Sequence record: PV611058.1 | Strand: one strand, 5' to 3' | Length of the DNA: 64,000 nt | Part shown: positions 1-64,000 of the stretch, in pieces | Position numbering within the stretch: the stretch's first letter is position 1 | Layout of the letters: each line of letters begins with the position of its first letter | Notes under the pieces: generated by a model | Database searches by the model: none | What the model saw: only the letters and a program-made list of their open reading frames with translations | What the model was told of the DNA's origin: nothing | Program-made: the position numbers and the translations under genes

Positions 1-80
1 TTCAACATGGATTGAACGGAAACCCGAATCCTCATTCTGATCCCAAAGTACTGGGTTAGTTTTAAACAGTACTGACATAG

Positions 81-614
81 TTATTTCCTCATGTATTTTA
101 TTACATCTTCAAATAGTTTAGTTTTCAGTGCATCATCATTACCAGGTAGAAAAGTACTGAAGCTATTAAAATCTTCATTCTTGGCAAACTCACGCATCTG
201 TGTGGAACTGTAGCGACTTATATTTCGGTCAATTCCAGCTTGAACTGCCTTGATTGAACAAAAATTATATAACTTCCCATTGTACGTGTCAAGTGTTTTT
301 TGGAATGGTTCAAGTCTATCTGAACCACATATGAAAAGAACATCTAAGTACTTTCCATCCAGTTCTCTCATTATATCAAACAGATTATCTTCTGTATAGA
401 TATTTTCTTGTACAGATGGGTAAAATCCTTCTGTATAGTACATTTTCAGTTCAGGAGGTAATGGGTTTTTGATGGCATCAGTACTGGTACTAAGGAATAT
501 TTTCAAATCAGCATTGTACTGTTCTTGTAGTGCTTGAGCTTTTTCAAACACTAAACCATGACCTCGATGTACAGGGTTAATTCTTCCGAATGTCACTACG
601 CATGTTTCTTTCAT
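81..614 (-). CDS. cytidylyltransferase-like (HxGH) nucleotidyltransferase
   Basis: TFGRINPVHRGH (HIGH-type motif), CGSDR and SSTQMR (KMSKS-like) motifs typical of phage cytidyltransferase-family proteins. Confidence 0.8.
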   Translation of the reverse strand: MKETCVVTFGRINPVHRGHGLVFEKAQALQEQYNADLKIFLSTSTDAIKNPLPPELKMYYTEGFYPSVQENIYTEDNLFDIMRELDGKYLDVLFICGSDRLEPFQKTLDTYNGKLYNFCSIKAVQAGIDRNISRYSSTQMREFAKNEDFNSFSTFLPGNDDALKTKLFEDVIKYMRK

Positions 615-1135
615 ATGTTCTTCATCACCTGACCAATAGATTTAAGATGGTTGATTTTAGCTGGAGTCAAATACTTATCCAGTACTATTAAACAACTAGG
701 GAATGGAGCACTGTCAGTCTTTTTATCTGGTTCTTCAGGGATACCGAACTTTAAGCGACCTTTTATAAAACAAATACAATCACAAACTTTCGCAGCATAA
801 TCCTGAAAGGCTATAGTATCAGTTCTTGATGGTACGAGAATCAGTACTGTAGCACCTTTGTTATATGCATCAACTGCCTTAGATAACCACGTTTTCAAAT
901 CACTGTACGGTGGGTTGAGCCACACGATATTGTTTCCCCAGTCCTGTTCAAGTGAATTGTCTTCTGGTGTAAAGAAATTATCACACAATGCTGTTTCTTT
1001 AACACATGCTGCATCTAGTGTAAATCCCCAGAGTTCATCCAAATCTTCAAAGAAATCCTTTGGAGTAGTCCAGTTATCTTTCCCAGTACTGAAATGTACT
1101 GATTGTTTTTTCTTCGAAGCATCCTTCTTCGACAT
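611..1135 (-). CDS. phage DNA N6-adenine methyltransferase (Dam-like family; specificity unknown)
   Basis: WTTPKDFF...FTLDAAC, catalytic WLNPPYS, LVPSRTDT, FIKGRLKF motifs of the phage N-6-adenine MTase family. Confidence 0.85.
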   Translation of the reverse strand: MSKKDASKKKQSVHFSTGKDNWTTPKDFFEDLDELWGFTLDAACVKETALCDNFFTPEDNSLEQDWGNNIVWLNPPYSDLKTWLSKAVDAYNKGATVLILVPSRTDTIAFQDYAAKVCDCICFIKGRLKFGIPEEPDKKTDSAPFPSCLIVLDKYLTPAKINHLKSIGQVMKNI

Positions 1136-1151
1136 ACATAATTTCCTTTGA

Positions 1152-1748
1152 TTATAGACAGTTAAGTACTATGTCATCAAAAGTACTACTGTCAATGTTG
1201 TATTCATATAAAAATTTAAAATGTGATCCATAACGCATCATCAGATTAAACTCTTCTTCAGTATTAAATTTGTAATCATGAAGAGTTTCAAGGGTACATG
1301 TTAAACCTAAAAACTCAATAATTTCTGATGTTACATCATTTCCTGAATTGAAGTATTTAACCCAAACACATTTTCCTTGTGGGTTGAATTTTCTATATTC
1401 TCCTTCTAGTTCTCCATTGACGATATGTGCTTTCGCACTGATTAGATTATTACTATAACGCTCTTCGTAGTAGTTCCCATAACGAGCTTTAAGAATTGTA
1501 GGCTTCTTGGTTGGGAATAACTTAATGGAAGTTAATTCAAAACCGCACTGCAACTCTTTGATGTACGAAATACATCCCTTTTCTTTAATCACAACAAAAC
1601 CAGTAAAATTCTCTTGGTCTTGGTTCTGATTGTCTGAATCAACAAATTCTAGTGTTTTATAAGTGACGCTTTTAGATTTTTTAATAAATGACATCATTAT
1701 TCCTATGGAAACATCAATGACTGTACATGGCGTTGACTTCATCAACAC
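1152..1748 (-). CDS. hypothetical protein with MORN-variant-like segment
   Basis: GELEGEYRKFNPQGK resembles a MORN-variant repeat; C-terminal TEEEFNLMM may be a divergent FQ-family motif. Confidence 0.6.
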   Translation of the reverse strand: MLMKSTPCTVIDVSIGIMMSFIKKSKSVTYKTLEFVDSDNQNQDQENFTGFVVIKEKGCISYIKELQCGFELTSIKLFPTKKPTILKARYGNYYEERYSNNLISAKAHIVNGELEGEYRKFNPQGKCVWVKYFNSGNDVTSEIIEFLGLTCTLETLHDYKFNTEEEFNLMMRYGSHFKFLYEYNIDSSTFDDIVLNCL

Positions 1749-1799
1749 CAGTCGAATTATACACGCTTCGCATGTCTAATTCGACGAAAGTACTATGAT

Positions 1800-2345
1800 T
1801 TGTTTTAATTAATATTGACGGGGTTTGCTTGAGCATATTTCATCCCCCCGCAGGGGAAAGAACAAAAAAGTTTGACGCTGGTGGCCTTCACATAGTTCAT
1901 ATCACGAATTCTCTTCCGAGGCGAAAGCGGGTTGCTCTGTTTCTCTCTATCGCGGTTCTTGTAGCAACGGTCGTCGGTCTTAAACATCCCGACACATAAT
2001 ACAAATACCATATGACCAGTACTTGTATTTGATTTCACGAATTTTGGACGCAACTATTTTGTATAAATTACGACCGCAAATTTCTCATGAAATCTCCCTT
2101 AGATAATTGGTAAGGTGCGATCCTTATATGTCTATCGAGGAACTCTCTTTATCCTATTGGAGTTCTTTATACAGCCGCATTGCCGTGAGTGGTTCAAACT
2201 ATGCCATCATCTAACGGGTTTCATTTGCTGTTCGTACTGAAAGGACTACTCATCTACCCTCTACTTTTCGAGTGGATTAGGCTTTAATCATTTCCATATG
2301 GAACCTTTCAGGATTAAAAAAAGGCGACAACATATTCTGCTGTCA
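1800..2345 (-). ncRNA. candidate large structured non-coding RNA (~0.5 kb), family not recognised
   Basis: no credible ORF; GC-richer than flanks; many stems; G-U pairs work on the minus strand; TGATATAAT -10 element just upstream (2352-2360). Confidence 0.4.
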
Positions 2346-2348
2346 CCT
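2315..2348 (-). terminator. intrinsic terminator-like hairpin
   Basis: GGTGACAGC-agaatat-GTTGTCGCC followed by T7, just after stop of 2366..3226. Confidence 0.6.
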
Positions 2349-2365
2349 TACATTATATCATAAAC

Positions 2366-3226
2366 TTATGGTATGTCTCGGTTGTATTCTGTTTTTTCAG
2401 TGAAATTAGTTAAGATATCTGCACTTAAGCTTCTCATAACCTCAATCTTACTTGGCATGAACCTGTGCTTGTTTTTTACATACAACTCATCATCTTCAAT
2501 GAAAGATGTGAACATGAATACCATATCTTCACGTGGGATTGAGAGAATATTACAGTTTTCATTTTCAGCAACAGGGGAATCATTGTAGTACTTAGAGAAT
2601 GCAGTACTTTGACGACCGATTATGATAGAATTTCGGATTAGAAAATTACTACAGTACTGAAAATCTTTGTAGTACTTGTCAAGGATATATGGCATTATCG
2701 CTTCTTTCACTTCTTCATATCCATTGGTACTATCAATTTCAGTACAATAATCTTCTCGGTCTTTTTTCCCTCGATGATTATCAAACTCGTACTCAAAGAA
2801 TAAATTTTCATTTAATGAATTATTTGAACCAACTGATCCACTATAGTATGATTTTCTATCATTCATTCGATCATCCGGGCATGATGCATACATAGAAATG
2901 TCATGTGTTGACGTACCGATATAAATTTTCTTAGTAATGTGATTGTACGCGATGTAATCATAATCTTGTACTCCAGTTAGCATTAACTGGAACATCAATT
3001 CATCAGGAACATCAATTAACGGGTACTCAAACTTCGAATATCTACTACGACAGAAATTCTTTTCAAATGCTCGATATGCGATGAAATCTTTTAGGTTTGT
3101 AATAGATTCATGCTCATGTGTACTACTGGTGCGTACATTGACATTAGTAGACGAGCAATACCCTTCAGATTCTTCTGCGTAGTCATAATAACCCTTACTG
3201 TAGTCAACGATTAGATAAAGTTTCAT
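2366..3226 (-). CDS. hypothetical protein
   Basis: 286 aa ORF with GGAG RBS; PDELMFQLML resembles the FQ motif. Confidence 0.75.
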   Translation of the reverse strand: MKLYLIVDYSKGYYDYAEESEGYCSSTNVNVRTSSTHEHESITNLKDFIAYRAFEKNFCRSRYSKFEYPLIDVPDELMFQLMLTGVQDYDYIAYNHITKKIYIGTSTHDISMYASCPDDRMNDRKSYYSGSVGSNNSLNENLFFEYEFDNHRGKKDREDYCTEIDSTNGYEEVKEAIMPYILDKYYKDFQYCSNFLIRNSIIIGRQSTAFSKYYNDSPVAENENCNILSIPREDMVFMFTSFIEDDELYVKNKHRFMPSKIEVMRSLSADILTNFTEKTEYNRDIP

Positions 3227-3237
3227 ATATCTCCAGA

Positions 3238-3270
3238 CAAAAAAAAGACGAGATATTATATCCCGTCCTT
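3238..3270 (-). terminator. intrinsic terminator
   Basis: GACGGGAT...ATCTCGTC stem followed by T8. Confidence 0.6.
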
Positions 3271-3277
3271 TGGTTTA

Positions 3278-3583
3278 TTAGTGGCTTGCCCAGCAGTAAA
3301 CAGGACGTAGATTTTCCATTGGGTTTACTTCAGGCTTCAGTACTGTAACACGAACTTCATACGGAGTACCATCTGCATGATGGAACGTTTCGTAATGAAT
3401 ACTCTCAATGAAGGTTTCATATTCTTCTTGAGAACGTGAACGAACTGATGGGGAATATTTCTTTTTGGTATCTGATTTTAGTGTAACACTTACTAGTTCT
3501 GATTCTTCACCATTTTCAAGTTTATTGAAATCGAACTCTGGTACACCTTCAAACATATCAAATTTCATTCCGTTGTCTTCCAT
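3278..3583 (-). CDS. hypothetical protein
   Basis: 101 aa acidic ORF with AAGGA RBS. Confidence 0.75.
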   Translation of the reverse strand: MEDNGMKFDMFEGVPEFDFNKLENGEESELVSVTLKSDTKKKYSPSVRSRSQEEYETFIESIHYETFHHADGTPYEVRVTVLKPEVNPMENLRPVYCWASH

Positions 3584-3634
3584 TTTAAATTCCTTTTTAT
3601 ATAATGTTAGTTAGATAGTTTTTAATAAATCAGA

Positions 3635-4021
3635 TTAGATTACGTCATACGGTAGAGTACCGTGACGGAATTTATCAAGTTGTGCAAGAACTTCTTTACG
3701 TTCGACAATCTCTGGCACATCTTCTTGCAGTTGGTCACATACTTCAACGATGAAATCCCAATCGCTCTCACAACTCACACGTACTGCTTCAATTGTTTTC
3801 CAATCAGCACTAATTTCACCTTCAGGATTTACATACGAAGGCCATACCTTTCCATAGTCTTGTACTGATTTGTCGTTAAGAACACGAATAGCATTGAAAA
3901 TCTGTCCAGTACTGAAGTGTTTAGTATTCTTCATGTCTTCTAAGCAACATAGCTTAGGTTCACCCTGGACTTCAATCAGAAGTACACCACCAATAGCTTT
4001 TAGAACAGAACTTGTATTCAT
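3635..4021 (-). CDS. hypothetical protein
   Basis: 128 aa ORF with GGAG RBS. Confidence 0.75.
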   Translation of the reverse strand: MNTSSVLKAIGGVLLIEVQGEPKLCCLEDMKNTKHFSTGQIFNAIRVLNDKSVQDYGKVWPSYVNPEGEISADWKTIEAVRVSCESDWDFIVEVCDQLQEDVPEIVERKEVLAQLDKFRHGTLPYDVI

Positions 4022-4092
4022 CTATATCTCCATTTATCAAAAAAAGATGTGAACATTATATCACAAGGAATTGTCATGTCCACAATATTTTA

Positions 4093-4386
4093 TCAAATAG
4101 TCAAACTTTCGTGCCAGTTATTGAAATCGTTAATAGCCAGCATAAACATATTCTCATCATTAAATTCTAGAATATGTTCATTGTATAAGTAGCTAATGTA
4201 CTTATTACTACAGTGTTTGCTATTCATAATTAGCATTTCAACTGCACGTTCATACGAACATGGGCTGAGATACAATTTTGTTCCATCAGGATGCTCAATC
4301 TCCACTGCACCAGGTGGAATAAAACGTTCACCAGTATAAGGGATATACGGCTCTGTTTTGAAAATAAGTTTGAATTTAGTATCCAT
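4093..4386 (-). CDS. hypothetical protein
   Basis: 97 aa ORF with GAGG RBS; NDENMFMLAI weakly FQ-like. Confidence 0.7.
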   Translation of the reverse strand: MDTKFKLIFKTEPYIPYTGERFIPPGAVEIEHPDGTKLYLSPCSYERAVEMLIMNSKHCSNKYISYLYNEHILEFNDENMFMLAINDFNNWHESLTI

Positions 4387-4402
4387 ACCAAATCCTCCAT
4401 AA

Positions 4403-5251
4403 TTACATTGTTTCTTTTATGTTGCGTAACATAGTATTAACTATGTTCATCTTCCCGCCTAACTTGAAGTAATATTCCAATTTATTAATAATATTACTTT
4501 TTAATATCTCAAATATTTGATATTCATTTGTTTCGAAACCAAGTTCGAATTGGAAAGTATATAAATTGTTGAATAGATGTACCAACGATGCATCAGGTGA
4601 TTCCATTGTAAATGTGTAGTTGGTACGATAACCAGTACTAATCACTACTTCCGATGATTCACCTTTCATGGATATGTCAATATTATACATCATTGGGCGA
4701 CCAGTTGCAATATCTTTCATTCGGAAGAATGCAGTACTACGATACACAACACCATCTTCGGTAACCTTTTCTTGTATAGTGATATTTGAAACTTCACTCT
4801 CTTTGAATTTGGATTCGAATGAATGAATACGATTTGATTTTTCATCATCCGTATACATAGTGCATGTATATTTTCCAAAATCATCTCTAGATGTATATGA
4901 TTTATCACTGCTAGTTTTATAAAACGAAACCCCATTGATGTGTTCTTCTTTGTACATCATTGTGTCATTGGATTTGTAGTATGAACAATTAGGTGTTGAA
5001 AGAGATTCAAAATTGTTCACATCATGACAGTAAGAAATAGAAGAATCGCTATACAGTACTACATCACGAATTGCAACTTCTTTTGAAGTACCTTTTTTGA
5101 CAGAAATTTGAAAGTCATTACATGGGAAAATTCTATATCCATCGTATGAATCTGATGTACTGATGCCAAATGGTGTAGTAGAATTTAGAAATTCGTTGAT
5201 ATGTTCAAGTACTGAATACTTTTTGAAATTACGAAAATCTGTTGTATCCAT
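4403..5251 (-). CDS. hypothetical protein
   Basis: 282 aa ORF with AGGAG RBS. Confidence 0.75.
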   Translation of the reverse strand: MDTTDFRNFKKYSVLEHINEFLNSTTPFGISTSDSYDGYRIFPCNDFQISVKKGTSKEVAIRDVVLYSDSSISYCHDVNNFESLSTPNCSYYKSNDTMMYKEEHINGVSFYKTSSDKSYTSRDDFGKYTCTMYTDDEKSNRIHSFESKFKESEVSNITIQEKVTEDGVVYRSTAFFRMKDIATGRPMMYNIDISMKGESSEVVISTGYRTNYTFTMESPDASLVHLFNNLYTFQFELGFETNEYQIFEILKSNIINKLEYYFKLGGKMNIVNTMLRNIKETM

Positions 5252-5278
5252 AGTAATACAATCTCCTAAATTTCGGAC

Positions 5279-5310
5279 AAAAAATTAGTCGAGAATAAAT
5301 CTCGACTTGT
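5279..5310 (-). terminator. intrinsic terminator
   Basis: AGTCGAGA-tttat-TCTCGACT plus T tract. Confidence 0.65.
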
Positions 5311-5418
5311 GTTTTACTTTACCATTCTTCATTGCTTTTTTACGGTCCACATGTGTTTGAGGTTTATTAAACTCATTCATATGCTTTTGTACAAAGTTGT
5401 TTACATTTTTAGCCATAC

Positions 5419-5892
5419 TTACTCCAAATCGGGATCTTTAACTGTTAGGCTTTCAATATCACTTGCGTAAAGAACTACATTAGTTTGTGTCTCTGATACT
5501 TTAAAATCATGATAACTATCTTTCACTTTAAAATTATCCAAAATAAACCCTTTACTACAACACATCATGATTTTATCATCTTTGATAGTGTATGTATTCT
5601 TTTTCTTACGTACTTCAGATTGTGGGGTAATATTATCATTGTTACGAATAACACAATCAATGTACTCGTCATTTGTACTCATAGGCATACCCATGATAAA
5701 CGAATTACTAGTACTGATTGTTAGTATGAAAACATTAGTATTTGGATTGTGAAAGAAGTCGTGCATAGTTTTACTGCATAAAAACAAGCACTGAATTATG
5801 TCCTTTACATTGAACATTATATCATGAACTTTGAATGCGTCCAACTCTAAAATGTCATCTATCTTTCCATTCTCAACAGTTTTAATCTCCAT
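5419..5892 (-). CDS. hypothetical protein
   Basis: 157 aa ORF with AAGGA RBS. Confidence 0.7.
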   Translation of the reverse strand: MEIKTVENGKIDDILELDAFKVHDIMFNVKDIIQCLFLCSKTMHDFFHNPNTNVFILTISTSNSFIMGMPMSTNDEYIDCVIRNNDNITPQSEVRKKKNTYTIKDDKIMMCCSKGFILDNFKVKDSYHDFKVSETQTNVVLYASDIESLTVKDPDLE

Positions 5893-5934
5893 GATCTATC
5901 CTTGATCTTCAAAGGCACTCCATGTGCACATATA

Positions 5935-6435
5935 TTAGGTCACAGCTTTGTATTTCTCCATTGCTTCGGTGATATTCAATACTGCTTGCGGTACGTCACT
6001 TTTGTTGTATGCAATGGTTAGTTTTTCCATGTTATTGAGAAGACTTAGAAACAATGGAAGTACTTCTGCATTGTCACTGAAGTTACAATCATTGACAGTA
6101 CTCAATTGAAATAACTCACCAGCATCAACATTGAGTGTGTTGTATTCTTTAACAATGTTTTCTTCAGTATTGAAGATGTAGAATACAGTCCCCATGTGGT
6201 GTAAGTATACACCAGTATCATTCTGAATATGACATGGGGTGATTACAATTGCTGTGTTATCAATATTATTTACTATTGTCAAACGCAGACTATGTAACCC
6301 AAAGATTACAGTACAATCCTTTGTACTGTGTTGGATCTGGTCACTAGTAAAGGAAGACCCACTATGATTTTTAGATCCATTTAGTATTTCTTTGATAATT
6401 TTAAATGAATACTTCATCGAATTAGTTAAAAGCAT
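5935..6435 (-). CDS. FQ-motif family hypothetical protein
   Basis: motif DAGELFQLSTVND. Confidence 0.75.
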   Translation of the reverse strand: MLLTNSMKYSFKIIKEILNGSKNHSGSSFTSDQIQHSTKDCTVIFGLHSLRLTIVNNIDNTAIVITPCHIQNDTGVYLHHMGTVFYIFNTEENIVKEYNTLNVDAGELFQLSTVNDCNFSDNAEVLPLFLSLLNNMEKLTIAYNKSDVPQAVLNITEAMEKYKAVT

Positions 6436-6835
6436 GAACTTTACCTTTAAGTAAATTAATTAATGATCGCATAGATTCAGTACTGACAGTACCAAAATCA
6501 ACACCTAAGCACTCGTATTGAAAGAACTCAATAGAATCAATTGAGTCCAAAGGAATCTCAACAACCTGATTCCCTATACCAGACATAGTAACATTGCTTT
6601 TATTAATCGTCAAGAAGTTTTTTGAATAAGTATTAAATTTTAGTGAAATCGCATCGGGGTGCTTTGTAACAATGCAGTACTGGGAGCCATACACATATAG
6701 TACTTTACTTTCACTAAGATCCGTTTTAAAAAAATGAATCCCATTGAAGTATTTCTCATTGGCTTCCATCGCCGCGATTAGTTCATCTGTTGTTGTTAAC
6801 CTTGTTTCGTTCTTCGTTAAACTGTTGAAAAGCAT
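6422..6835 (-). CDS. FQ-motif family hypothetical protein
   Basis: motif DSIEFFQYECLG. Confidence 0.75.
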   Translation of the reverse strand: MLFNSLTKNETRLTTTDELIAAMEANEKYFNGIHFFKTDLSESKVLYVYGSQYCIVTKHPDAISLKFNTYSKNFLTINKSNVTMSGIGNQVVEIPLDSIDSIEFFQYECLGVDFGTVSTESMRSLINLLKGKVHAFN

Positions 6836-7256
6836 AGAATACTACCTTAACCATTTGTAGTGTTTCAGACATTACTTCTGATGAAAATTCAACATCATTG
6901 AATTTCAGCATAGTGTTCTGTGTAAAGAAAGTTGCTTCTAAGTCTTCCAGATTGAAGGGTTCATCAAACAAATTAGTACTGAACATGTCAGTCTTCTTCT
7001 TGTATGTGAACAAGAATTTGGAATTATAACGAAGAACTATTTCATCTTTATTAACCAAAATACGTGCAATGTTCTGACGTGTCAATGTGGTAATGTTTAA
7101 ATTGAACACGTTCTTGCGTGTTTCAGTGATATCAACAAAATACCCATCTCCCTGATGGATATTACATCGTACATCCAACCCTTTCTGTACTGTATTGAAC
7201 AGTGCATCTTGAATAAAATAATTTGCTGTATCGATGTTTCCTAAAATGTCTAACAT
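6783..7256 (-). CDS. FQ-motif family hypothetical protein (divergent)
   Basis: motif LEATFFTQNTML. Confidence 0.7.
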   Translation of the reverse strand: MLDILGNIDTANYFIQDALFNTVQKGLDVRCNIHQGDGYFVDITETRKNVFNLNITTLTRQNIARILVNKDEIVLRYNSKFLFTYKKKTDMFSTNLFDEPFNLEDLEATFFTQNTMLKFNDVEFSSEVMSETLQMVKVVFYAFQQFNEERNKVNNNR

Positions 7257-54444: not shown

Positions 54445-54449
54445 ATTAA

Positions 54450-55972: not shown

Positions 55973-56058
55973 TTTAGTTTCCTTGTAGTGGGGAGAACCA
56001 TTTTCTCCCCTTGATGTAATGTATTATACTTTATTCGATTTACTTTGCAAGTACTTTT

Positions 56059-56286: not shown

Positions 56287-56523
56287 TGTTTTGATTCCTT
56301 TGATTTGGAAGGAGAACCGTTTCCCCCTCTCGATGTAAAACATTATACGCTAATCTCTTAATCGTGCAAGTACTTTTTATTACTTTTTGCAAAATACTTT
56401 AAACGCTCTCAATCGCGTTCTTACAGCCTTAACGCCACCAGCTAGGGCAATGCATCAGATAATCAGTTTAATGCGTTAGAATCGTTTCTAGGCGGTGCTG
56501 GTGGCCTGGTAAACGATAAACAC

Positions 56524-56552
56524 AAAAAAGCCCACCGTTTAAGGTGGGCTAG
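56524..56552 (-). terminator. intrinsic terminator
   Basis: AGCCCACC-ttaaac-GGTGGGCT plus T6. Confidence 0.75.
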
Positions 56553-56571
56553 TGATTCAGTACTTTAATTG

Positions 56572-57054: not shown

Positions 57055-57104
57055 TTTATAAATCCTCAATTAAAGTTTAGTTTACGTTTATTAGTGTATC
57101 AAAG

Positions 57105-57175
57105 TTTTCTCGACGTGTCCAGTTTTTCGTTCGACTTACTGGCGGTCTACTTAGTGCTCCCCGTCTTGATGTAAT
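57105..57175 (-). ncRNA. family-2 RNA element (leader of H-NS-like gene)
   Basis: ACATCAAGACGGGGA...TAAGTAG...CCAGT-AAGTCGAACGAAAA-ACTGG; promoter TTGACA-N16-TAGAAT. Confidence 0.5.
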
Positions 57176-57257
57176 ACATTCTACGCTTTTCTGTGGTAAT
57201 GTCAACTACTTTTTTAAAACTATTTTCAAAGTATCTCAGTACTACGATACTACAAAA

Positions 57258-57282
57258 ACAAAAAAGCCCACCAGGTGGGCTA
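57258..57282 (-). terminator. intrinsic terminator
   Basis: AGCCCACC-t-GGTGGGCT core plus T tract. Confidence 0.65.
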
Positions 57283-57287
57283 TGTAC

Positions 57288-57518
57288 TTAATCAGTGAGT
57301 AAAATATTAAACACTTTACCATTTAACGTTATTGGTGCACTGCTACCAGGCTCAAGATCCGTTAGTATACCTGCAATCGCTTTATCATTGGCTACCTTTC
57401 CAGTGTCCAACAGAACTACAGTACTGATAAGATTAACGCTCGTTTCAATATCATAATGCACGGCGTTAAGTAGTTGTGTAGTACTGCTTTCGTTAAGTAA
57501 AACAATTCGCTTAGTCAT
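57288..57518 (-). CDS. small hypothetical protein
   Basis: GGGG RBS. Confidence 0.65.
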   Translation of the reverse strand: MTKRIVLLNESSTTQLLNAVHYDIETSVNLISTVVLLDTGKVANDKAIAGILTDLEPGSSAPITLNGKVFNILLTD

Positions 57519-57539
57519 GATGTTACCCCGTAGTATCTA

Positions 57540-57839
57540 TCAACGGCAATTAATAACGCCGGTATGCGTTACTTTCTCAGTATCCATTACAGTGACCGAA
57601 CCGCGTTTAGTACTGGCATCATAATAAATTGTTGTGCTACCGTTTTCGTCTTCTTCATGGAACGGGCCGTTTTTAAATGCTTCCGGCTGGATCTCTAAAT
57701 CCTTTAATACAATCTCGCCAGTTCTTTCATCGGTCATTGCAACAGTGCACTGAATGAATTTTTCACTACTTACATCTAATGACGCATTAACAGCGAAAGA
57801 GGAAACAGATAAAGCCAGGGCGATGATTGCAATTTTCAT
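57540..57839 (-). CDS. putative exported protein
   Basis: signal-peptide-like MKIAIIALALSVSSFAVNA; two Cys. Confidence 0.7.
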   Translation of the reverse strand: MKIAIIALALSVSSFAVNASLDVSSEKFIQCTVAMTDERTGEIVLKDLEIQPEAFKNGPFHEEDENGSTTIYYDASTKRGSVTVMDTEKVTHTGVINCR

Positions 57840-57923
57840 TTGATTATCCTTAGTTACCAGGGGGAACCGCTCCCCCTTGCGATGTAAAATATTATACAGT
57901 ACTAAAAACTAATTGCAAGTACT

Positions 57924-58160
57924 TTATGATTTTTTATAAAACATTTCAGCAGTGATATTTTTACCCGTTGGCTGTACTTTATCCAGAATTTTTTGATGTC
58001 CAGGGCGACCAAATGAATATGATCCGTAAACCGTAAACCAGTAGTTGCCATCAGTGTTTACATGTACAGCACAATAGGGTACGCCCCGCGATTCATCACT
58101 AGTAAAGTGTGATACAGTTCCCGTTACATTCGCAGACGTTGATTTGATTTGTTCGAGCAT
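57924..58160 (-). CDS. small hypothetical protein
   Basis: own cassette, AAGGA RBS. Confidence 0.7.
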   Translation of the reverse strand: MLEQIKSTSANVTGTVSHFTSDESRGVPYCAVHVNTDGNYWFTVYGSYSFGRPGHQKILDKVQPTGKNITAEMFYKKS

Positions 58161-58269
58161 TTTCTTATTCCTTAGTTACCAGGGGAACCGCTCCCCCTAT
58201 GCAAAACATTATACGCGTTTAAAAACTAATTGCAAGTATTTTAATAAAAAGTATTTGAAAAAATAGTTG

Positions 58270-58352
58270 TTGACAAGTGCATCCAGTACTGGCATAATTA
58301 CTACATCAAGACGAAACAGTCACTAACCCACCGGGTGCCGAGATCCGTCTAT
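58270..58352 (+). ncRNA. family-1 two-hairpin RNA element (plus strand)
   Basis: TTGACA-N17-CATAAT; GAC-GAAACA-GTC-ACTA-ACCC-ACC-GGGT-GC; faces the bidirectional hairpin at 58377-58402. Confidence 0.6.
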
Positions 58353-58404
58353 TAAATGATTCAGTACTGAAAAAGTAACGGGGAGTTATTATCTCCCCGC
58401 GTTG

Positions 58405-58626
58405 TTATTTTGTAAGGTATAAACAGAAGTCGCCTTTATTTGCTACGCCGCCAGTGTAACGCGATGAATAGTTAGAAACGTCCTGGACTTCTGCTATTAC
58501 CAGGGTATCATCATTCAATTCGTCGCAGAAGCAAACGGCTGGATCTTGTACGCCGATTTTGTCAGCATGTTCCCGCATAGATTTCACCAGTGCTTCCAGT
58601 TGGGAAAGAGTAGTGATATTAGCCAT
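58405..58626 (-). CDS. small hypothetical protein
   Basis: start moved to MANIT (GAGGA RBS). Confidence 0.65.
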   Translation of the reverse strand: MANITTLSQLEALVKSMREHADKIGVQDPAVCFCDELNDDTLVIAEVQDVSNYSSRYTGGVANKGDFCLYLTK

Positions 58627-58710
58627 TGTATTTTCCTCATTACCAGGGAGAACCATTTCTCCCTTTGATGTAAACCATTATACAGTACTGAAAACTAATT
58701 GCAAGTACTT

Positions 58711-58899
58711 TTAATTAAATTCCATAAAATCATTTTCAACGTGCACAACAATCTGATTATTTTTAAAGGACGCAGAAAACTCTATACAATCATAAACCGC
58801 TTTTTCTGTTACCAGACTATGAGCACCAATCGGATTAATTGGGGATTGAATTGTTTCAATCTCGTTACCTTGTTCATTAACGATTAAAATATTAAACAT
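58711..58899 (-). CDS. small hypothetical protein
   Basis: AGGAG RBS. Confidence 0.65.
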   Translation of the reverse strand: MFNILIVNEQGNEIETIQSPINPIGAHSLVTEKAVYDCIEFSASFKNNQIVVHVENDFMEFN

Positions 58900-58938
58900 T
58901 GCCGTTACTCCTGGATAGTGTTAACTCGATATAAAGTA

Positions 58939-59121
58939 TTATACGCCTTTATTGCTTAGTGTCCAGTGATCACGCATCATACGCCCCGCACGATCCCAGC
59001 TAGTAGGCATGGGTATGCCTTGCAATTCGTTAGGGGAGATCTCGACCTCGATCCCTACATCAATAACAGTCATTCCAGCTTTCGCAGCTTGCTCGCGGAT
59101 AACCTCAGATAATGTTGTCAT
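58939..59121 (-). CDS. small hypothetical protein
   Basis: own promoter, AGGAG RBS. Confidence 0.65.
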   Translation of the reverse strand: MTTLSEVIREQAAKAGMTVIDVGIEVEISPNELQGIPMPTSWDRAGRMMRDHWTLSNKGV

Positions 59122-59195
59122 GATTAAAGCTCCTGGATAGTGTTAACTCGATATAAAGTATTATACAGTACTGAAAACTAATTGCAAGTACTTTT

Positions 59196-59456
59196 TCAAT
59201 ATTGTTTGTCGTTGTCTTCCTCGATGAATTGACCGACGAAATGATCTACTTTCGCTTTGAGGCTTTTATAATCTTCTTCTACTTCCTTTAAACGTTCCTG
59301 GTAGTATTCCAGGGCTTGAATATACGCCGCCTCAGCAGTTTTTGCACGCATAGCTAAATTCATTCCACGCGTTTCATCAAATAGCCAATAACCATCGGTG
59401 CAATGACTGATAGATAATGATTTACTTAGTACTGTATAGGCAATTACTTTACTCAT
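59196..59456 (-). CDS. small phage hypothetical protein
   Basis: GAGGG RBS; C-terminal coiled coil. Confidence 0.7.
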   Translation of the reverse strand: MSKVIAYTVLSKSLSISHCTDGYWLFDETRGMNLAMRAKTAEAAYIQALEYYQERLKEVEEDYKSLKAKVDHFVGQFIEEDNDKQY

Positions 59457-59513
59457 TAGATAACCCTCAGTAAAGGCGGGAACTATTACCCGCCATTATC
59501 TCAGTACTGAATA

Positions 59514-59753
59514 TTACATTCCAACCATTGCAGCACGGATCGCAGTAGTGCTATACTTAAAGCCGTCCGGCGTTGTAGTAGTACCGTTGGCTTTTAATCT
59601 GCGGTACATACATTCCGCAGCAATATCTTTAGTTCTACTTTGTGCGATGCAACTTTGAGCAAGCCGATACAATGACTCACCGTTATTAATCCAAAGGCTT
59701 ACATTCCAATGAGTTTTGTTTTTGTGTCCGTTGTAAGTTTTAGTACTAGCCAT
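59514..59753 (-). CDS. hypothetical protein (HWNVSLWINN motif; paralogue of 61566..61805)
   Basis: HKNKTHWNVSLWINN and PDGFKYSTTAIRAAMVGM shared; start moved to MASTK. Confidence 0.75.
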   Translation of the reverse strand: MASTKTYNGHKNKTHWNVSLWINNGESLYRLAQSCIAQSRTKDIAAECMYRRLKANGTTTTPDGFKYSTTAIRAAMVGM

Positions 59754-59843
59754 TTTTAAATCCTCGTTTGAGCGGGGAACCACTCCCCGCCTCGATATAA
59801 AGTATTATACGCTTTTAAACTTAGTTTGCAAGTACTTTTTAAA

Positions 59844-60455
59844 TTAATATTCGATTGATTCTACTACGCCATCAATAACATTGAATTGATACTCGTTACC
59901 CTCAATCAGTGCCGTAATGTTTTCAGTAGTGAATTGATCCTCATATGCATTCTCTAAATCACGGTACAACTTGCGGGACAATTCACGAATAGTTTCAGTG
60001 AGTAGTTCCTCAAGCTCATTAACTAACTTTTCTTGTTTTGCGGTTAAATCAGTGTAAGCCGATTCAATGTACCCGCTTACCGTGTTTTCGTGTGCGTAGC
60101 GAGAGTGTGAACGTTCTACACTCATTGCCAAATCATCTTCATTCAACAAGTGACGGATAGAACGATATTTCGTTAACGCTTTAATCTTGCGTAAAAACTT
60201 CACTGCGTCCACGTTGTCAGTACTGATTGATGCACCGTCACCTTGCGACCAAAAACCACTGTATTGCAATTCAGCTTCATCTATGCCGTATTCTGGTAGT
60301 ACTGTTTCTTTATAGTACTCGATAACGCCCTCAGCAAAGAAATTATCCTCACATGAACGCTCACGATCCCGAACCAGTTCGATAGCCGCCGTTTTTTGTT
60401 CTGCGTTCAGTTCAGAAAAAGCCATAACAAAAGTAGTAGTAGTGATAGTTTTCAT
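59844..60455 (-). CDS. conserved hypothetical protein (YSGFWSQGDGAS motif)
   Basis: motif recurrent in phage/plasmid proteins, from memory often labelled antitoxin-like; function not established here. Confidence 0.7.
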   Translation of the reverse strand: MKTITTTTFVMAFSELNAEQKTAAIELVRDRERSCEDNFFAEGVIEYYKETVLPEYGIDEAELQYSGFWSQGDGASISTDNVDAVKFLRKIKALTKYRSIRHLLNEDDLAMSVERSHSRYAHENTVSGYIESAYTDLTAKQEKLVNELEELLTETIRELSRKLYRDLENAYEDQFTTENITALIEGNEYQFNVIDGVVESIEY

Positions 60456-60523
60456 TTTGTAACCCTCATTCAGTAGTTGATGTAAGTATTATACGCTTTT
60501 ACTTTCTATTGTCAAACTATTTT

Positions 60524-60600
60524 ATCAGGGGAGTTTTTCGTGTGCCTTACTCCTGGGCTACTTAACGGGAAGTTACTTATTTCGTTCCCCGTCCTGATGT
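60524..60600 (-). ncRNA. family-2 structured RNA element
   Basis: near-copy of 48769..48843 with loop AAGGCACACGAAAA; own promoter. Confidence 0.55.
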
Positions 60601-60680
60601 AAAACATTATACGCCTTTAAACATAGTTAGCAAGTACTTTTTAAAAATAGTTTTCAGTACTGAATAGTAAAAAAAAAGTA

Positions 60681-60765
60681 TTGACAGCATTATCAAGTAC
60701 TGGCATAATAGCTACATAAAGACGAGAAAGTCACTAACCCACCGGGTGCATAACTGTAACTATAC
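60681..60765 (+). ncRNA. family-1 two-hairpin RNA element (plus strand)
   Basis: TTGACA-N17-CATAAT; GAC-GAGAAA-GTC-ACTA-ACCC-ACC-GGGT-GC. Confidence 0.6.
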
Positions 60766-60780
60766 TAAACTACTTTTTCT

Positions 60781-60860
60781 ATAGATACATCTCCGCACCC
60801 TATGGGCTACGGCTTATCTGCCAATGAATACATTATGCCAGTACTGACAAAATAAGTCAA
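60781..60860 (-). ncRNA. family-1 two-hairpin RNA element
   Basis: TTGACT-N17-CATAAT; GGC-AGATAA-GCC-GTA-GCCC-ATA-GGGT-GC-GGAGATGTATCTA. Confidence 0.6.
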
Positions 60861-60894
60861 TACCGGCAATTGTAAATTTTTCAAAAAAATATGA

Positions 60895-61125
60895 TTATAC
60901 TGCAATCGCGTCCAGGCTGTAATAATAATAAGTGCCGTATTGGTGTACTTTATTACCTTTTATTTCAGTACTGAATGAATCCGAACGATTTGCATATGAT
61001 GTTAATTTAAAGTACTTTGATTTGCTGATACGTTGCCATACACCACAGATCCGCTGTAAGTAAGTAGTTTTATTCGTGGTAGTATCTTTTACGGTTTTAA
61101 CTTCAGTCATATACATATTAGTCAT
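60895..61125 (-). CDS. small hypothetical protein
   Basis: own cassette, GGAG RBS. Confidence 0.7.
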   Translation of the reverse strand: MTNMYMTEVKTVKDTTTNKTTYLQRICGVWQRISKSKYFKLTSYANRSDSFSTEIKGNKVHQYGTYYYYSLDAIAV

Positions 61126-61212
61126 TTTTATTACTCCAGGTTATAGGCGGGAAGAGTTCCCGCTCTCGATGTAAAACATTATACGCCTTTAAACATAGTT
61201 AGCAAGTACTTT

Positions 61213-61479
61213 TTATTCAAGTACTGCAATCTTTTTAGTACGGTACACGGTCACGCGGTTGCCCTTTCGGTCGAGCTTTATTTCTACCACTCGACGCGAT
61301 ACACTATCGGGACTTTTTAAGGCCGCTAACCAGTACTGTAATGATCTGGCGGTACTACGCTTTACAATGGCCCAACGTTTACCACGTTCCGATTGTACGC
61401 CCATATCTTTAAACGTTGCCCCGTCCTGGCGTGCGGCGATCCGAGCTTGTTCACGCGTCGCAAAATACTTAATATTCAT
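61213..61479 (-). CDS. hypothetical protein (paralogue of 47253..47648)
   Basis: FATREQAR...FKDMG...GKRWAI; DRKGNRVTVY; start moved to MNIKY. Confidence 0.7.
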   Translation of the reverse strand: MNIKYFATREQARIAARQDGATFKDMGVQSERGKRWAIVKRSTARSLQYWLAALKSPDSVSRRVVEIKLDRKGNRVTVYRTKKIAVLE

Positions 61480-61565
61480 GCTGTTGCCCTTATCGTTGGT
61501 GTATGAATAAAACACTATTATAAAGTACTATCGCAAAAAAATGATAGTACTTTAAATAAATTCTA

Positions 61566-61805
61566 TTACATTCCAACCATCGCCGCACGGATCGCAGTAG
61601 TGCTATATTTGAATCCGTCCGGTGTTTTATCTTGTCCAGTCTGTTCTAAAAATAACATCATATGACGGGCCGCATCATTGCGATTAGTATTGGCGGCAAT
61701 AAAGTCCAGGGCCAACCGATACAATCCCTCATCGTTATTAATCCACAGGCTTACATTCCAATGAGTTTTGTTTTTGTGACCTAAGAACATTTTTGATTTA
61801 GCCAT
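61566..61805 (-). CDS. hypothetical protein (paralogue of 59514..59753)
   Basis: HKNKTHWNVSLWINNDEGLY; start moved to MAKSK (GAGGA RBS). Confidence 0.75.
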   Translation of the reverse strand: MAKSKMFLGHKNKTHWNVSLWINNDEGLYRLALDFIAANTNRNDAARHMMLFLEQTGQDKTPDGFKYSTTAIRAAMVGM

Positions 61806-61897
61806 TTTTTTAATCCTCTTATATAGTGGGGAACTATTCCCCACCTGATGTAAAACATTATACGCTTTTATTCAGTACTGTCAAACTAATTTTTAAC

Positions 61898-62260
61898 TTA
61901 TTCGTAAATTTTGCCACTGTCAGCCCATACCAGGAAACGAGGCATATTATCCCATGCATCTTGTTTTAAATTTAAACCGTGTAATACTTCTGTACTTTCC
62001 ATTCCTGGTACTGGTTTACTATACACCGCGAAATTTTCGCCCATATACTGATAAGCCATCGTCAAATCACTGGCGATCATCTTATGGATCATCGCATCAA
62101 GCATCACGGTGGCGGCGTATTGTTCACGCTTAAGCGGCAGCATTTTAATCAGTTCGCGGTATGCGTCAATGTGAGTTTTAACCGTTGCCGCCGGAAGATC
62201 TTTCATATCGTCGCGGAAGTTAACCAGGTTAGCAATGATTTTAGTGATTTGAGTCGCCAT
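61898..62260 (-). CDS. hypothetical protein
   Basis: own cassette. Confidence 0.7.
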   Translation of the reverse strand: MATQITKIIANLVNFRDDMKDLPAATVKTHIDAYRELIKMLPLKREQYAATVMLDAMIHKMIASDLTMAYQYMGENFAVYSKPVPGMESTEVLHGLNLKQDAWDNMPRFLVWADSGKIYE

Positions 62261-62374
62261 CGTTTTAATCTCTTAAAAGTGAGTAGGGAAGTGTTCCCGC
62301 TCTCGATGTAAAACATTATACGCTTTTTTCAGTACTGTGCAAGTACTTTCTACAAATACTTTTAAAATAGTTTT

Positions 62375-62466
62375 CTTTCTATATAGGAGTACTATTATTC
62401 AGTACTGAATCAATCCAGGGGAACTATCTTTCTATATAGGAGTACTATTATTCAGTACTGAATCAA
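62375..62466 (+). repeat. 39-bp direct repeat (2 copies), each with two AGTACT
   Basis: CTTTCTATATAGGAGTACTATTATTCAGTACTGAATCAA at 62375-62413 and 62428-62466. Confidence 0.9.
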
Positions 62467-62618
62467 CCAAATCACTACTACACCCCATAAAACGGCCTCA
62501 GACGCATTCTAACGCATTAATACACCTAAGCTATACATTTGCACCATTCTAATCATTCCAGGGCGTTACGGGCCGTTTAAACGCGTTGAATTATTTTCAA
62601 TTATTTTGTTTTTAGGTA

Positions 62619-62702
62619 TTGACTTGATCCTGAAAAAGCGTATAATTACTACATAGACGCGAGAAAGCGGATACCCCAGGGGGTGCGGAATTGTGCCCAA
62701 AA
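62619..62702 (+). ncRNA. family-1 RNA element (variant)
   Basis: TTGACT-N16-TATAAT; CGC-GAGAAA-GCG-GAT-ACCC-CAGG-GGGT-GC. Confidence 0.5.
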
Positions 62703-62834
62703 TTCAAGATATAAAAAAAGGATACACTCCCGCACCCTAGCAGGTAAACGCACTTTCTCAGTACTGAAATATAGTACCATAGTCCGGCCCAGGATAGCAA
62801 GCAAATTAATTAAAACTTTTTTGCTTCCAGGGTA

Positions 62835-62918
62835 TTGCTTTATTTTTTCAGTACTGTATAATAGTTCCATCAAGTCGAGAAAGACTCAAGCCCACCGGGT
62901 GCATAGTTACGCCCAAAA
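62835..62918 (+). ncRNA. family-1 RNA element
   Basis: TTGCTT-N16-TATAAT; AGTC-GAGAAA-GACT-CAA-GCCC-ACC-GGGT-GC. Confidence 0.55.
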
Positions 62919-63084
62919 TTCAGTACTGAAAAAATTTTTAAAAATATCCGGCCAGGCCGTTGACATTGCCCCCAGTTTATAAGATAATGATTCCAGATTC
63001 AGAAAAATCTAACACCAGATACTGCGGGGAAACTATCCCCACGCGGTAGGGGAACTATTGGAAAAAACAAAATAAAATTTTGAT

Positions 63085-63200
63085 TTAGCCGTCTATACTT
63101 CCAGACGTGTAACCATCTAGCCGTTTAGCCGTCCAAACGTCTAGCCATCCAGCCATCCAGAAATCTAGCCGTTTAGCCGTCTAGATGGATAGCCATCTTT
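63085..63200 (+). repeat. cluster of iterated (T/C)AGCC(G/A)T heptamers
   Basis: about eight TAGCCGT/TAGCCAT/CAGCCAT units, including TCTAGCCGTTTAGCCGTC twice. Confidence 0.8.
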
Positions 63201-63607
63201 ACTTCCAGACTTCTGGAGGGCTAGACATATCTACGCCCAAAATCCATCCAGGGTAACTACACCCAAAATCCGTCAGTACTATACCATAGATCTATCTTTT
63301 GAAAGGGAGTATTCAGTACTGCCATCATAGCCCTCACTATGTTACCCTAGGAGGATGAAGACCATCATGTAGTACTGAATACTGTTAGAGGGAATCCACC
63401 AGCACAAGCTGGTGGCATAATGCTTTAGATTAAAATCAGTACTGACACCATTCTGTTAATATCAGTACTGTTATTACGATTTTCATATGAGGTTCAAAAA
63501 GATGTACCACCACAGGAGGAACTATCTTTTCTGTACTGTCTCACGACAGGAGGTAGAGTAAATGAATTGTTCGCAGCAACTCATCACCCCTTGAAGCTAT
63601 GTAGAAC

Positions 63608-63635
63608 ATTATACAGTACTGAATCATAAAGTCAA
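63608..63635 (-). promoter_or_regulatory. sigma70-type promoter with CAGTACTG in spacer
   Basis: TTGACT-TTATGATTCAGTACTG-TATAAT. Confidence 0.6.
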
Positions 63636-64000
63636 TAACTTTCTTTCATCTTTCAGTACTGATATTCTTGAGAACTACCCGACTACAAACATCATTATAT
63701 CCCACAAATCATAAACGTCCCAACGTAAATTTCAACTTTCGAAGATCCAACTTTTATTTCATAAGTACTCCAAAATTTTTAGGATCGAGATTTAGGATGG
63801 AGTACTAACCAACTTTTTGCTGGAGCCTCAAGGGGTAATTGAATTTTACCCCGAAGGGTAAAAGGGTAATTGAAATTAAGGTGAAAGTAATAATTCAGTA
63901 CTAATCATTGCGTGATTACTTTTGATTACATTTGATGTAATTTGCAAAATGGAAAAGGAGCTTGGAAACTACAAAGTACGGCAGACTTCCTCTGCCTACT

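Follow-up and report, generated by a model that had tools for sequence, protein, structure and literature searches.

The hexameric palindrome AGTACT occurs about ten times more often than expected by chance in the genome of Escherichia phage WPEC3, an Asteriusvirus (Rak2-like jumbo phage), and its copies appear to be maintained by selection. The same enrichment was found in all ten other enterobacterial-type Rak2-like genomes tested. In addition, one 8-kb block of genes that cannot carry the word lacks the triplet ACT entirely on its sense strand. Full-text literature searches on AGTACT in jumbo phages, its over-representation, methyltransferases, Asteriusvirus, RaK2 promoters, ScaI and ACU-directed mRNA interferases, as well as a reading of the papers on fEgEco12, Sharanji, CBB, RaK2, giant-virus methylomes and marine methylomes, revealed no description of either feature.

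We analyzed the last 64,000 bp of the 384-kb record PV611058.1 (hereafter, the window) together with the whole record and the genomes of related phages. An earlier note, based on the sequence of the window alone, claimed that AGTACT is present at very high frequency in all reading frames, and this observation is confirmed here. The note's interpretation of the word as a cis-acting address for a phage protein (a condensing protein, a modification enzyme marking self DNA, or a global repressor) is partly supported by our results.

Over-representation of AGTACT

The window contains 267 copies of AGTACT. The expected number is 21.3 from base composition, 17.4 from a first-order Markov model and 47.5 from a second-order model. 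AGTACT is the most frequent hexamer of the window, and CAGTACTG is its commonest octamer form (66 copies). In the whole record AGTACT is also the commonest hexamer, with 1156 copies against 118-129 expected, i.e., about 1 per 330 bp. All ten positions given in the note for the first 1200 bp are correct. Its three examples of different reading frames are also correct, although the sites start at 4634, 6059 and 2653, so that the coordinates were off by at most 3. The claim of a similar density over most of the window fails in two stretches, 24857-33249 and 35656-41628, which have no copies. The main features of the window are as follows.

1..24856: AGTACT-rich stretch of small minus-strand genes, 102 copies, about 1 per 244 bp
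611..1135 (minus strand): gene of a predicted Dam-family (PF05869) DNA adenine methyltransferase
24929..33250 (minus strand): ACT-free block of about 22 genes of unknown function
25074..25150: run of N (masked or assembly gap) inside the ACT-free block
33250..35655: short AGTACT-dense stretch between the two empty stretches, 16 copies
33723..33751 (minus strand): sigma-70-like promoter (TTGACA-17-TATAGT, with TG) with AGTACT in its spacer
35656..41628 (minus strand): AGTACT-free array of about 25 small paralogous genes
41498..64000: right copy of the 22,503-bp terminal repeat (early region), 148 copies, the highest density of the genome
44789..63655 (minus strand): set of early sigma-70 promoters with AGTACT built in

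According to our ORF calls, 174 copies in the window lie in minus-strand genes, in frames 0/1/2 = 63/48/63, and another 76 copies lie in the 12% of the window outside ORFs. In the whole record 948 of 1156 copies are in coding sequences, whereas shuffling of synonymous codons within genes, which preserves the amino acid sequences, gives 265±14 (z=48). By frame the counts are 453/177/318 against 142/50/74, an enrichment of 3.2-4.3 times in all frames. Frame 0 (Ser-Thr, AGT ACT) is the commonest, but the density is highest outside genes.

The enrichment is specific to the exact hexamer rather than to WGTACW in general. TGTACA has an observed-to-expected ratio (O/E) of 1.0, and GGTACC and CGTACG are absent. 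One-mismatch neighbours of AGTACT are mildly enriched (1.1-2.2 times). The flanks carry information only at positions -1 and +1, where C and G, respectively, are favoured, and about zero information beyond; thus the copies are not part of a longer repeat unit. The rest of the genome shows strong palindrome avoidance: GCGC occurs 0 times against 254 expected, many GC-containing hexamers are at zero, and GATC is under-represented (O/E 0.63).

Conservation and distribution among phages

Individual copies and their synonymous bases are conserved between species and genera. In PBECO4, 35 of 45 sites are kept, against 47% of all hexamer windows. The third base of the codons GTA, TAC and ACT is kept more often inside the motif than in the same codons elsewhere. 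For GTA the values are 78% against 58% in comparison with A4 (P=1e-9) and 75% against 45% in comparison with RaK2 (P=2e-8). These data indicate purifying selection, although conservation alone cannot exclude a repair-driven bias.

Ten other genomes of five or more genera carry 843-1235 copies of AGTACT each, against 134-187 copies of the reversed word. The enrichment is absent in PA5oct, T4 and Atu_ph07. In particular, CAGTACTG occurs 247 times in RaK2 and 2, 0 and 2 times in PA5oct, T4 and Atu_ph07, respectively. The phages with the trait were isolated mostly on Enterobacterales, but one of them, XbC2, is recorded on Xanthomonas; PA5oct is a Pseudomonas relative.

AGTACT in early promoters

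Paired copies of AGTACT occupy fixed places in early sigma-70 promoters, about two helical turns apart: one abuts or overlaps the -35 element, and the other is one base upstream of the -10 element. The forms are AGTACT-TTGaca-like ... AGTACT-N-TATAAT and TTGACA-N10-AGTACT-G-TATAAT. Examples are at 44789, 45283, 48131, 48400, 49690, 51840/51862, 52416, 53994/54014, 57898/57918, 58684/58704 and 59167/59187. The window contains 25 instances of AGTACT-N-TATAAT against 5.6 expected, about 14 of them with a perfect TTGACA. The distance between paired copies peaks at 20-24 bp in WPEC3, CBB and Yen9-04, and the consensus AAAAGTACTTGac...AGTACT(G/T)TATAAT was found in RaK2, CBB, A4 and Yen9-04. Only the paired and promoter copies have a fixed position; about 8% of copies are integral parts of strong sigma-70-type early promoters in the terminal repeat, and most copies are intragenic. 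The density falls from early to late regions, from 4.5 to 1.9 per kb of coding sequence.

The ACT-free block

In the block 24929-33250 there is no ACT on the sense (minus) strand, i.e., no AGT on the plus strand, over 8321 bp, the unread letters of the run of N excepted. About 165 ACT are expected. By frame the counts are 0/0/0 against 49.5/39/36 expected (log10 P about -70). AGTACT is replaced by 46 copies of sense AGTACA (plus-strand TGTACT), which is enriched 15-fold and is conserved in 25 of 38 cases against a background of 40%. The absence of ACT holds across the genus and was observed in fEgEco12, PBECO4, SP27 and A4. It is maintained by selection: 1326 substitutions relative to PBECO4 would create 55±7 AGT, and none is seen. 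The same was found in A4 and in Salmonella phage Munch, where an ACT-free block of 3 genes is present. The block starts just downstream of the promoter at 33723-33751 and ends at the next promoter. Downstream of the former there are only two sense ACT, both inside AGTACT at 33477 and 33250, before the ACT-free run. Both promoters were assigned by consensus alone.

The flanks of the run of N map to PV611058.1 with the same offset and no mismatch, and they are colinear in WPEC5, CMSTMSU, Ecwhy_1 and EC.P1. In fEgEco12, vB_Ec-M-J and Turkey3 the match begins just right of the gap, so the gap sits at a synteny break in those relatives. No gene spans the gap: a small minus-strand ORF (24984 onward) runs open into it, and the next gene ends at 25187. 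The right edge of the gap is a run of ten C.

The proteins of the block gave no Pfam match, belong to PHROG families of unknown function and have homologues only within Asteriusvirus. There was a weak SPRY-like hint from the Atlas, and an AlphaFold model (pLDDT 69) had no PDB match. Rfam and tRNA scans of the window found nothing. No gene of the PemK/MazF or PrlF families was found in the phage. A phyletic screen for genes shared by the phages with ACT-free blocks yielded 19 candidates, and the ten that were scanned had no informative Pfam match.

The AGTACT-free gene array

The genes of the array 35656-41628 have a median amino acid identity of 24% and share a GTNYQE motif; the family begins at 34991. 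The array is also empty in PBECO4 and nearly empty (2 copies) in SP27. Both motif-free stretches recur in independent isolates and are not an artefact of one record. They cannot be regarded as recent foreign DNA either, because lineage-specific genes have more copies of AGTACT than core genes, and the array is old.

Discussion

We suggest that AGTACT is an exact palindromic address on double-stranded DNA that is read by a twofold-symmetric, clade-specific phage protein, a binder and/or a methyltransferase. This reading is unproven, and we hold it only tentatively. Our data show the roughly tenfold excess independent of codons and amino acids, the specificity for the exact hexamer, the absence of a longer repeat unit, the conservation of individual copies and of their synonymous bases, the presence throughout the clade and absence in its nearest outgroups, and the two fixed positions in early promoters. 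Everything beyond this, including binding and modification themselves, is inference from sequence: an abundant phage protein would bind these sites; at early promoters it would sit where RNA polymerase must bind and so would act as a global switch of early transcription; and the roughly 900 intragenic copies would give it genome-wide coverage as a mark or coat on self DNA. In the ACT-free block the site persists as the half-degenerate AGTACA and is still conserved, so in this view the demand for the site is genome-wide and separate from the ban on ACT.

Of the suggestions made in the note, the phage origin, the real excess and its contrast with palindrome avoidance are supported. The excess survives the codon-preserving shuffles and is specific to AGTACT, and the word is under purifying selection, which fits a cis-acting address. 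The global repressor gains indirect support from the paired copies at fixed promoter positions in several genera. On the other hand, no binding or modifying protein was identified. The note missed that the trait belongs to a whole clade of jumbo phages and that one of the empty stretches has a total ban on sense-strand ACT. Several facts speak against our reading. An exact 6-bp site with weak tolerance of mismatches is more typical of restriction or modification enzymes than of regulators. Over 80% of copies lie inside genes, where an operator role explains nothing. The 6-kb gene array does without any copy, which argues against a strict need for even coverage. Finally, if the outer base pair can be swapped from A:T to T:A in the block, the lack of TGTACA enrichment elsewhere has no ready explanation.

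The best surviving alternative, possible but in our opinion unlikely, is that the functional entity is a methyl mark read by other proteins. AGTACT, a site of the ScaI/Eco255I type, would be the target of a phage methyltransferase, and this would be a private counterpart of GATC/Dam/SeqA raised by enrichment to a GATC-like density (about 1 per 300 bp). Methylation-sensitive early promoters would then serve as a timer between injected and newly replicated DNA. The only nominated candidate enzyme is the Dam-family protein encoded at 611-1135 (Pfam E=6e-33), by family and distribution alone. It has homologues in RaK2 and CBB, is annotated in slurp01, PBECO4 and A4, and has none in PA5oct, T4 or Atu_ph07, which matches the distribution of the motif; however, this phyletic match is shared by some 200 other clade genes. 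The exact hexamer specificity and the paired promoter sites about two turns apart agree with this possibility, and RaK2 DNA is reported to be methylated and to resist many enzymes (PMC3622015). However, the enzymes of this Pfam family that are known to us methylate GATC, and fEgEco12 DNA is cut as predicted by ten enzymes, so there is no global modification (PMC13070987). Besides, methylation alone does not explain why more sites are better.

An RNA-level signal seems unlikely. In this case AGUACU would be a processing or decay site of an ACU-directed endoribonuclease, densest in early genes so that their mRNAs are cleared, as T4 RegB does at GGAG, and the ACT-free block would be a set of immune messages. 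The decreasing density from early to late regions and the promoters at the block ends are compatible with this, and a palindrome gives the same RNA word from either strand. However, copies sit upstream of the -35 of early promoters, and AGTACA is enriched and conserved inside the block, where a cleavage site has no use. ACU alone already occurs every 47 nt, so a hexamer adds little, and 88% of genes share one strand, so an RNA signal need not be a palindrome.

A neutral drive, in which a repair or mutation bias, e.g., very-short-patch-like correction toward the cognate site of a phage methyltransferase, creates and keeps AGTACT without any function of the word, is slightly less likely still. 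It would also raise apparent conservation, and the mild enrichment of one-mismatch neighbours is what decayed copies would give. But the deamination neighbours AGTATT/AATACT are not depleted (O/E 1.36), the promoter positions are conserved across genera, the old 6-kb array stays free of the word, and no C5-methylase/Vsr pair for this site is known here.

Recruitment or titration of a DNA-binding protein conserved in Enterobacterales is very unlikely. The nucleoid-occlusion factor SlmA has AGTACT at the core of its site GTGAGTACTCAC, and the trait is mostly confined to phages of Enterobacterales. However, the extended form GTNAGTACTNAC has only 2 copies in 384 kb, G at -1 and C at +1 are the least favoured flanks, and XbC2 is recorded on Xanthomonas. 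A LexA box was rejected by inspection of the sequence. A by-product of codon or dipeptide use, a dispersed repeat or an assembly artefact is refuted by the codon-preserving shuffles, the lack of flank conservation and the excess in at least eleven independently sequenced genomes.

The closest analogue is HIP1, the highly iterated palindrome GCGATCGC of cyanobacteria. Both words are exact short palindromes, many-fold over-represented, at about one per few hundred bp, inside genes in all frames, spread by point changes rather than within a repeat unit, and conserved beyond neutral expectation. In neither case has a function been established, and in both a methyltransferase link is suspected. AGTACT is an analogue and not a member: it is an AT-rich 6-mer of a virus clade, is built into early promoters at fixed positions and stands against extreme palindrome avoidance. 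GATC with Dam, SeqA and MutH in gamma-proteobacteria resembles AGTACT in its density (about 1 per 250-330 bp), in pairs spaced by helical turns in promoters and control regions, and in the co-occurrence of a Dam-family gene, but GATC needs no enrichment to reach this density, and methylation of AGTACT remains hypothetical. Phage promoter words include the T4 MotA box and late TATAAATA, T5 early promoters and the RpoD-like promoters reported for CBB in the early region and the terminal repeat, without mention of AGTACT (PMC5259590). AGTACT is not a -35 or -10 element itself but flanks them. Chi, DNA uptake sequences and KOPS are also short words kept frequent by selection because a protein reads them, but they are asymmetric, orientation-biased and serve host machinery.

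The ACT-free block resembles ACA-less messages that resist the MazF mRNA interferase and the one-orientation EcoP15I sites of phage T7. A short word is totally absent from one strand of a set of genes through synonymous choices, as expected if a single site is lethal to the message or the DNA. Here, however, ACA is plentiful and ACG is not avoided either, so neither MazF (ACA) nor ChpBK (ACY) is the agent, and no nuclease specific for ACU is known to us.

A more speculative possibility, which we consider doubtful, is that these phages carry two superimposed nucleic-acid codes. The first would be a private DNA address, AGTACT, by which a phage-encoded protein or methylation system recognises and times the phage's own genome, orthogonally to the host's GATC system. 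The second would be a natural ACU-less operon, of about 22 genes in Asteriusvirus and 3 in Munch, whose messages would be immune to an as yet unknown ACU-specific endoribonuclease of host-defence or phage host-shutoff origin. It would be the natural counterpart of the engineered ACA-less single-protein-production approach.

Phages are expected to purge short palindromes, and this one purges many, yet it keeps about 1000 copies of one ScaI-type site under selection. We infer that something in these jumbo phages reads that word, and since the word is exact, dense and clade-wide, its reader should be easy to find. The ACT-free block is a very clean signature of selection against a triplet, and it predicts an unknown ACU-specific nuclease, or another strand-specific agent, together with a set of phage genes built to escape it. 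Finding the reader of AGTACT would open the unknown regulatory biology of a group of phages now being isolated for therapy, and it may also give a tractable model for the long-unsolved HIP1 problem.

Genomic context of the window

Outside its N run, the window is identical to positions 320132-384131 of Escherichia phage WPEC3 (PV611058.1). WPEC3 is an Asteriusvirus, one of the Rak2-like jumbo myophages with genomes of about 350-385 kb. Nearly all genes in the window lie on the minus strand. The features referred to below are as follows (window coordinates).

81-1135: a nucleotidyltransferase-like gene and the Dam-family methyltransferase gene that it overlaps, the latter at 611-1135
about 1900-2290, read on the minus strand: an unannotated conserved stretch, a candidate structured RNA
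8191-23351, minus strand: a long series of genes of 150-200 aa
24929-33250, minus-strand genes: the ACT-free block, which is the first of two stretches without AGTACT
25074-25150: the N run
33751-33723: a consensus promoter
34991-41400: a tandem array of small paralogous genes
35656-41628: the second stretch without AGTACT
41498-64000: the right copy of the terminal repeat

The terminal repeat is 22,503 bp long, and its right copy is identical to record positions 1-22503. A close relative has a terminal repeat of 20,993 bp that was confirmed experimentally (PMC13070987). The repeat is packed with genes of 30-130 aa, each behind its own near-consensus sigma-70 promoter, and two of these genes encode DksA/TraR-type zinc-finger proteins. 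The genes at 8191-23351 fall into several small paralogous families (for example 14817, 16051, 21532, 21950, 22444, and 22881), all of unknown function.

Both flanks of the N run map to the public record with the same offset and no mismatch. Relatives were compared only beside the homologous place. The flanks are colinear in four further relatives, while in three others (fEgEco12, vB_Ec-M-J, and Turkey3) the match starts right after the gap, so the gap sits at a synteny break. No gene spans the gap. A small minus-strand ORF (24984 onward) runs open into it, the next gene ends at 25187, and the right edge is a run of ten C (25151-25161). The public record holds a second N run at 163592-163691.

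The stretch at about 1900-2290 is conserved at the nucleotide level across genera (Kaldavass, XbC2, Yen9-04, Serratia BF, CBB, Munch, EJP2, and Kae01). It has no Rfam or tRNA match. RNAalifold on five genera gives 34 pairs, 17 of them with compensatory changes, which makes the stretch a candidate new structured RNA.

Over-representation of AGTACT

The window contains 267 copies of AGTACT, whereas 21 are expected from base composition, 17 from a first-order Markov model, and 48 from a second-order model. AGTACT is the most frequent hexamer of the window. The whole record contains 1156 copies against 118-129 expected, and AGTACT is again the top hexamer, followed by its own overlaps. The flanks carry information only at -1 (C is favoured, G is avoided) and at +1 (G is favoured, C is avoided). 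Thus this is a dispersed word and not a repeat element.

Other palindromes are at or below expectation. GCGC is completely absent from WPEC3 (0 against 254 expected) and also has zero copies in A4, RaK2, and Munch (the comparison covered the whole record and five relatives). About thirty GC-containing 6-bp palindromes have no copies in the window, and GATC has an observed-to-expected ratio of 0.63. TGTACA is at expectation, while GGTACC and CGTACG are absent. One-mismatch neighbours of AGTACT are enriched only 1.1-2.2-fold, and the deamination neighbours are not depleted.

We shuffled synonymous codons within each gene, which preserves both the proteins and the codon use of each gene. The shuffles give 265±14 copies against 948 observed (z=48). 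In frames 0/1/2 the observed counts are 453/177/318 against 142/50/74. Sequence outside ORFs is denser still, with 203 copies in 32.6 kb. The earlier note, which had described AGTACT as written into the DNA at very high frequency in all reading frames, named in advance outcomes that would count against it, among them a count reproduced by codon-preserving shuffles and equal enrichment of other WGTACW-like hexamers; neither of these two was obtained. The observation of the note is confirmed.

Conservation and distribution of AGTACT

In a 12-kb alignment, 35 of 45 sites are kept in PBECO4 (85% identity), against 47% of all hexamer windows. Results for slurp01, SD-15_S21, and A4 are similar. Genome-wide, the synonymous third base of GTA, TAC, and ACT is kept more often inside the motif than in the same codons elsewhere. 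This holds both within the genus (A4: 78 against 58%, 82 against 55%, and 78 against 65%, respectively) and between genera (RaK2, GTA: 75 against 45%, P=2e-8). Accessory genes carry more copies per kb than core genes (3.3-4.0 against 2.2). Low density is therefore not a sign of recent arrival.

We counted 843-1235 copies in Turkey3, slurp01, PBECO4, SD-15_S21, A4, Erwinia phage Kaldavass, Xanthomonas phage XbC2, Yersinia phage fHe-Yen9-04, Pectobacterium phage CBB, Salmonella phage Munch, and Klebsiella phage RaK2. The reversed word gives 134-187 copies in those genomes where it was counted; for RaK2 the comparison is a first-order Markov expectation of 79. The form CAGTACTG occurs 247 times in RaK2 but only 2, 0, and 2 times in PA5oct, T4, and Atu_ph07, respectively. 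In every genome the density peaks in the terminal-repeat or early region and is lowest in the long late genes.

AGTACT in promoters

Copies outside ORFs often come in pairs 20-24 bp apart, and this spacing peak recurs in WPEC3, CBB, and Yen9-04. The pairs belong to strong sigma-70-type promoters facing the genes. One copy abuts or overlaps the -35 (AGTACTTGCA, AGTACTATTGACA), and the other lies one base before the -10 (AGTACT-G/T-TATAAT). The same consensus appears in RaK2, CBB, A4, and Yen9-04. The window has 25 occurrences of AGTACT-N-TATAAT against 5.6 expected, about 14 of them with a perfect TTGACA and a 16-nt spacer. In gene-relative profiles, copies pile up just after stop codons and 40-60 nt before starts. 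The promoter copies are under a tenth of all copies.

A block of genes without ACT

The stretch 24929-33250 lacks not just AGTACT but every AGT on the plus strand, i.e., every ACT on the sense strand. About 165 are expected in this 8.3-kb block of about 22 genes, while plus-strand ACT is normal at 208. This is by far the strongest word desert of the genome (log10 P about -70). All 13 genes of 300 nt or more in the block lack ACT, and no such gene elsewhere in the genome does. The absence holds in all three frames, with 0/0/0 against 49.5/39/36 expected from the block's own proteins.

In place of AGTACT the block has 46 sense AGTACA, with only 2 copies each of the C and G variants. The AGTACA sites are conserved against PBECO4, with 25 of 38 kept against a 40% background. 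The desert recurs in fEgEco12 (98% identity), in PBECO4 and SP27, and in A4 (6981 bp), and the ban is kept across Asteriusvirus despite 21% divergence. The 1326 substitutions between WPEC3 and PBECO4 would have made 55±7 AGT if placed at random, and none exists.

Salmonella phage Munch has a second, smaller sense-ACT desert of 1955 bp over three plus-strand genes (log10 P about -13; record 25612-27567). It also carries AGTACA in place of AGTACT, and its genes show no detectable homology to the WPEC3 block. RaK2, CBB, and Yen9-04 have no such desert.

The WPEC3 block starts about 470 nt downstream of the consensus promoter at 33751-33723, and in that interval the only two ACT lie inside AGTACT. 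The block ends exactly at the start of gene 24599-24937, which is preceded by TTGAAA-17-TATAAT. The proteins of the block are genus-specific and of unknown function and fold.

We consider it about as likely as not that the genes of the block give ACU-less messages that escape an as yet unknown ACU-specific endoribonuclease. A strand-specific agent acting at the DNA level, such as a primase, a nickase, or a single-strand DNA modifier, cannot be excluded from sequence alone. MazF and ChpBK are not the agents because ACA is plentiful in the block, and the phage encodes no PemK/MazF or PrlF family protein. No report of the ACT-free block was found, and to our knowledge no natural precedent has been described.

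The second stretch without AGTACT

The array at 34991-41400 consists of about 25 small (70-90 aa) paralogous genes in tandem that share a GTNYQE motif. Their median amino-acid identity is 24%, so the array is old. It abuts the terminal repeat. The stretch 35656-41628 is the only other part of the genome without AGTACT. It has no copies in PBECO4 either, and only 2 in SP27. About 1.5-1.9 copies are expected by chance, so the stretch shows no enrichment rather than clear avoidance.

Possible mechanism

The exact palindrome, the copies upstream of promoters, the selection on synonymous sites, and the survival of a half-site variant under the ACT ban all point to recognition of double-stranded DNA by a symmetric, clade-specific protein. 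The excess, its independence of codon use, the conservation of the copies, their distribution, and their positions in promoters are shown by the sequence analysis; the protein itself, its binding to AGTACT, any methylation of the site, and a role in early transcription are inferred. The proposal of the earlier note that the motif is a cis-acting address for a phage protein is supported in part.

The putative protein may be a binder (a regulator or a coat), a methyltransferase with readers, or both. We tentatively prefer a binding protein with a switch role at early promoters. A methyl-mark system appears less likely. The only nominated enzyme is the Dam-family methyltransferase at 611-1135, whose homologues follow the distribution of the motif, but so do about 200 other genes. 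The adjoining nucleotidyltransferase-like gene, which is annotated in relatives as cytidyltransferase or phosphopantetheine adenylyltransferase (weak FAD_syn hit), overlaps the methyltransferase gene by 4 bases, and the two could be a DNA-modification pair. Readings based on an RNA-level signal, on a neutral drive, or on a host factor are less likely still.

None of the papers searched mentions the enrichment, and the genome papers on CBB and RaK2 describe promoters and methylation without it. The nearest known phenomenon is HIP1 of cyanobacteria, and the iterated AGTACT is an analogue of it in a virus clade, with copies embedded in promoters.
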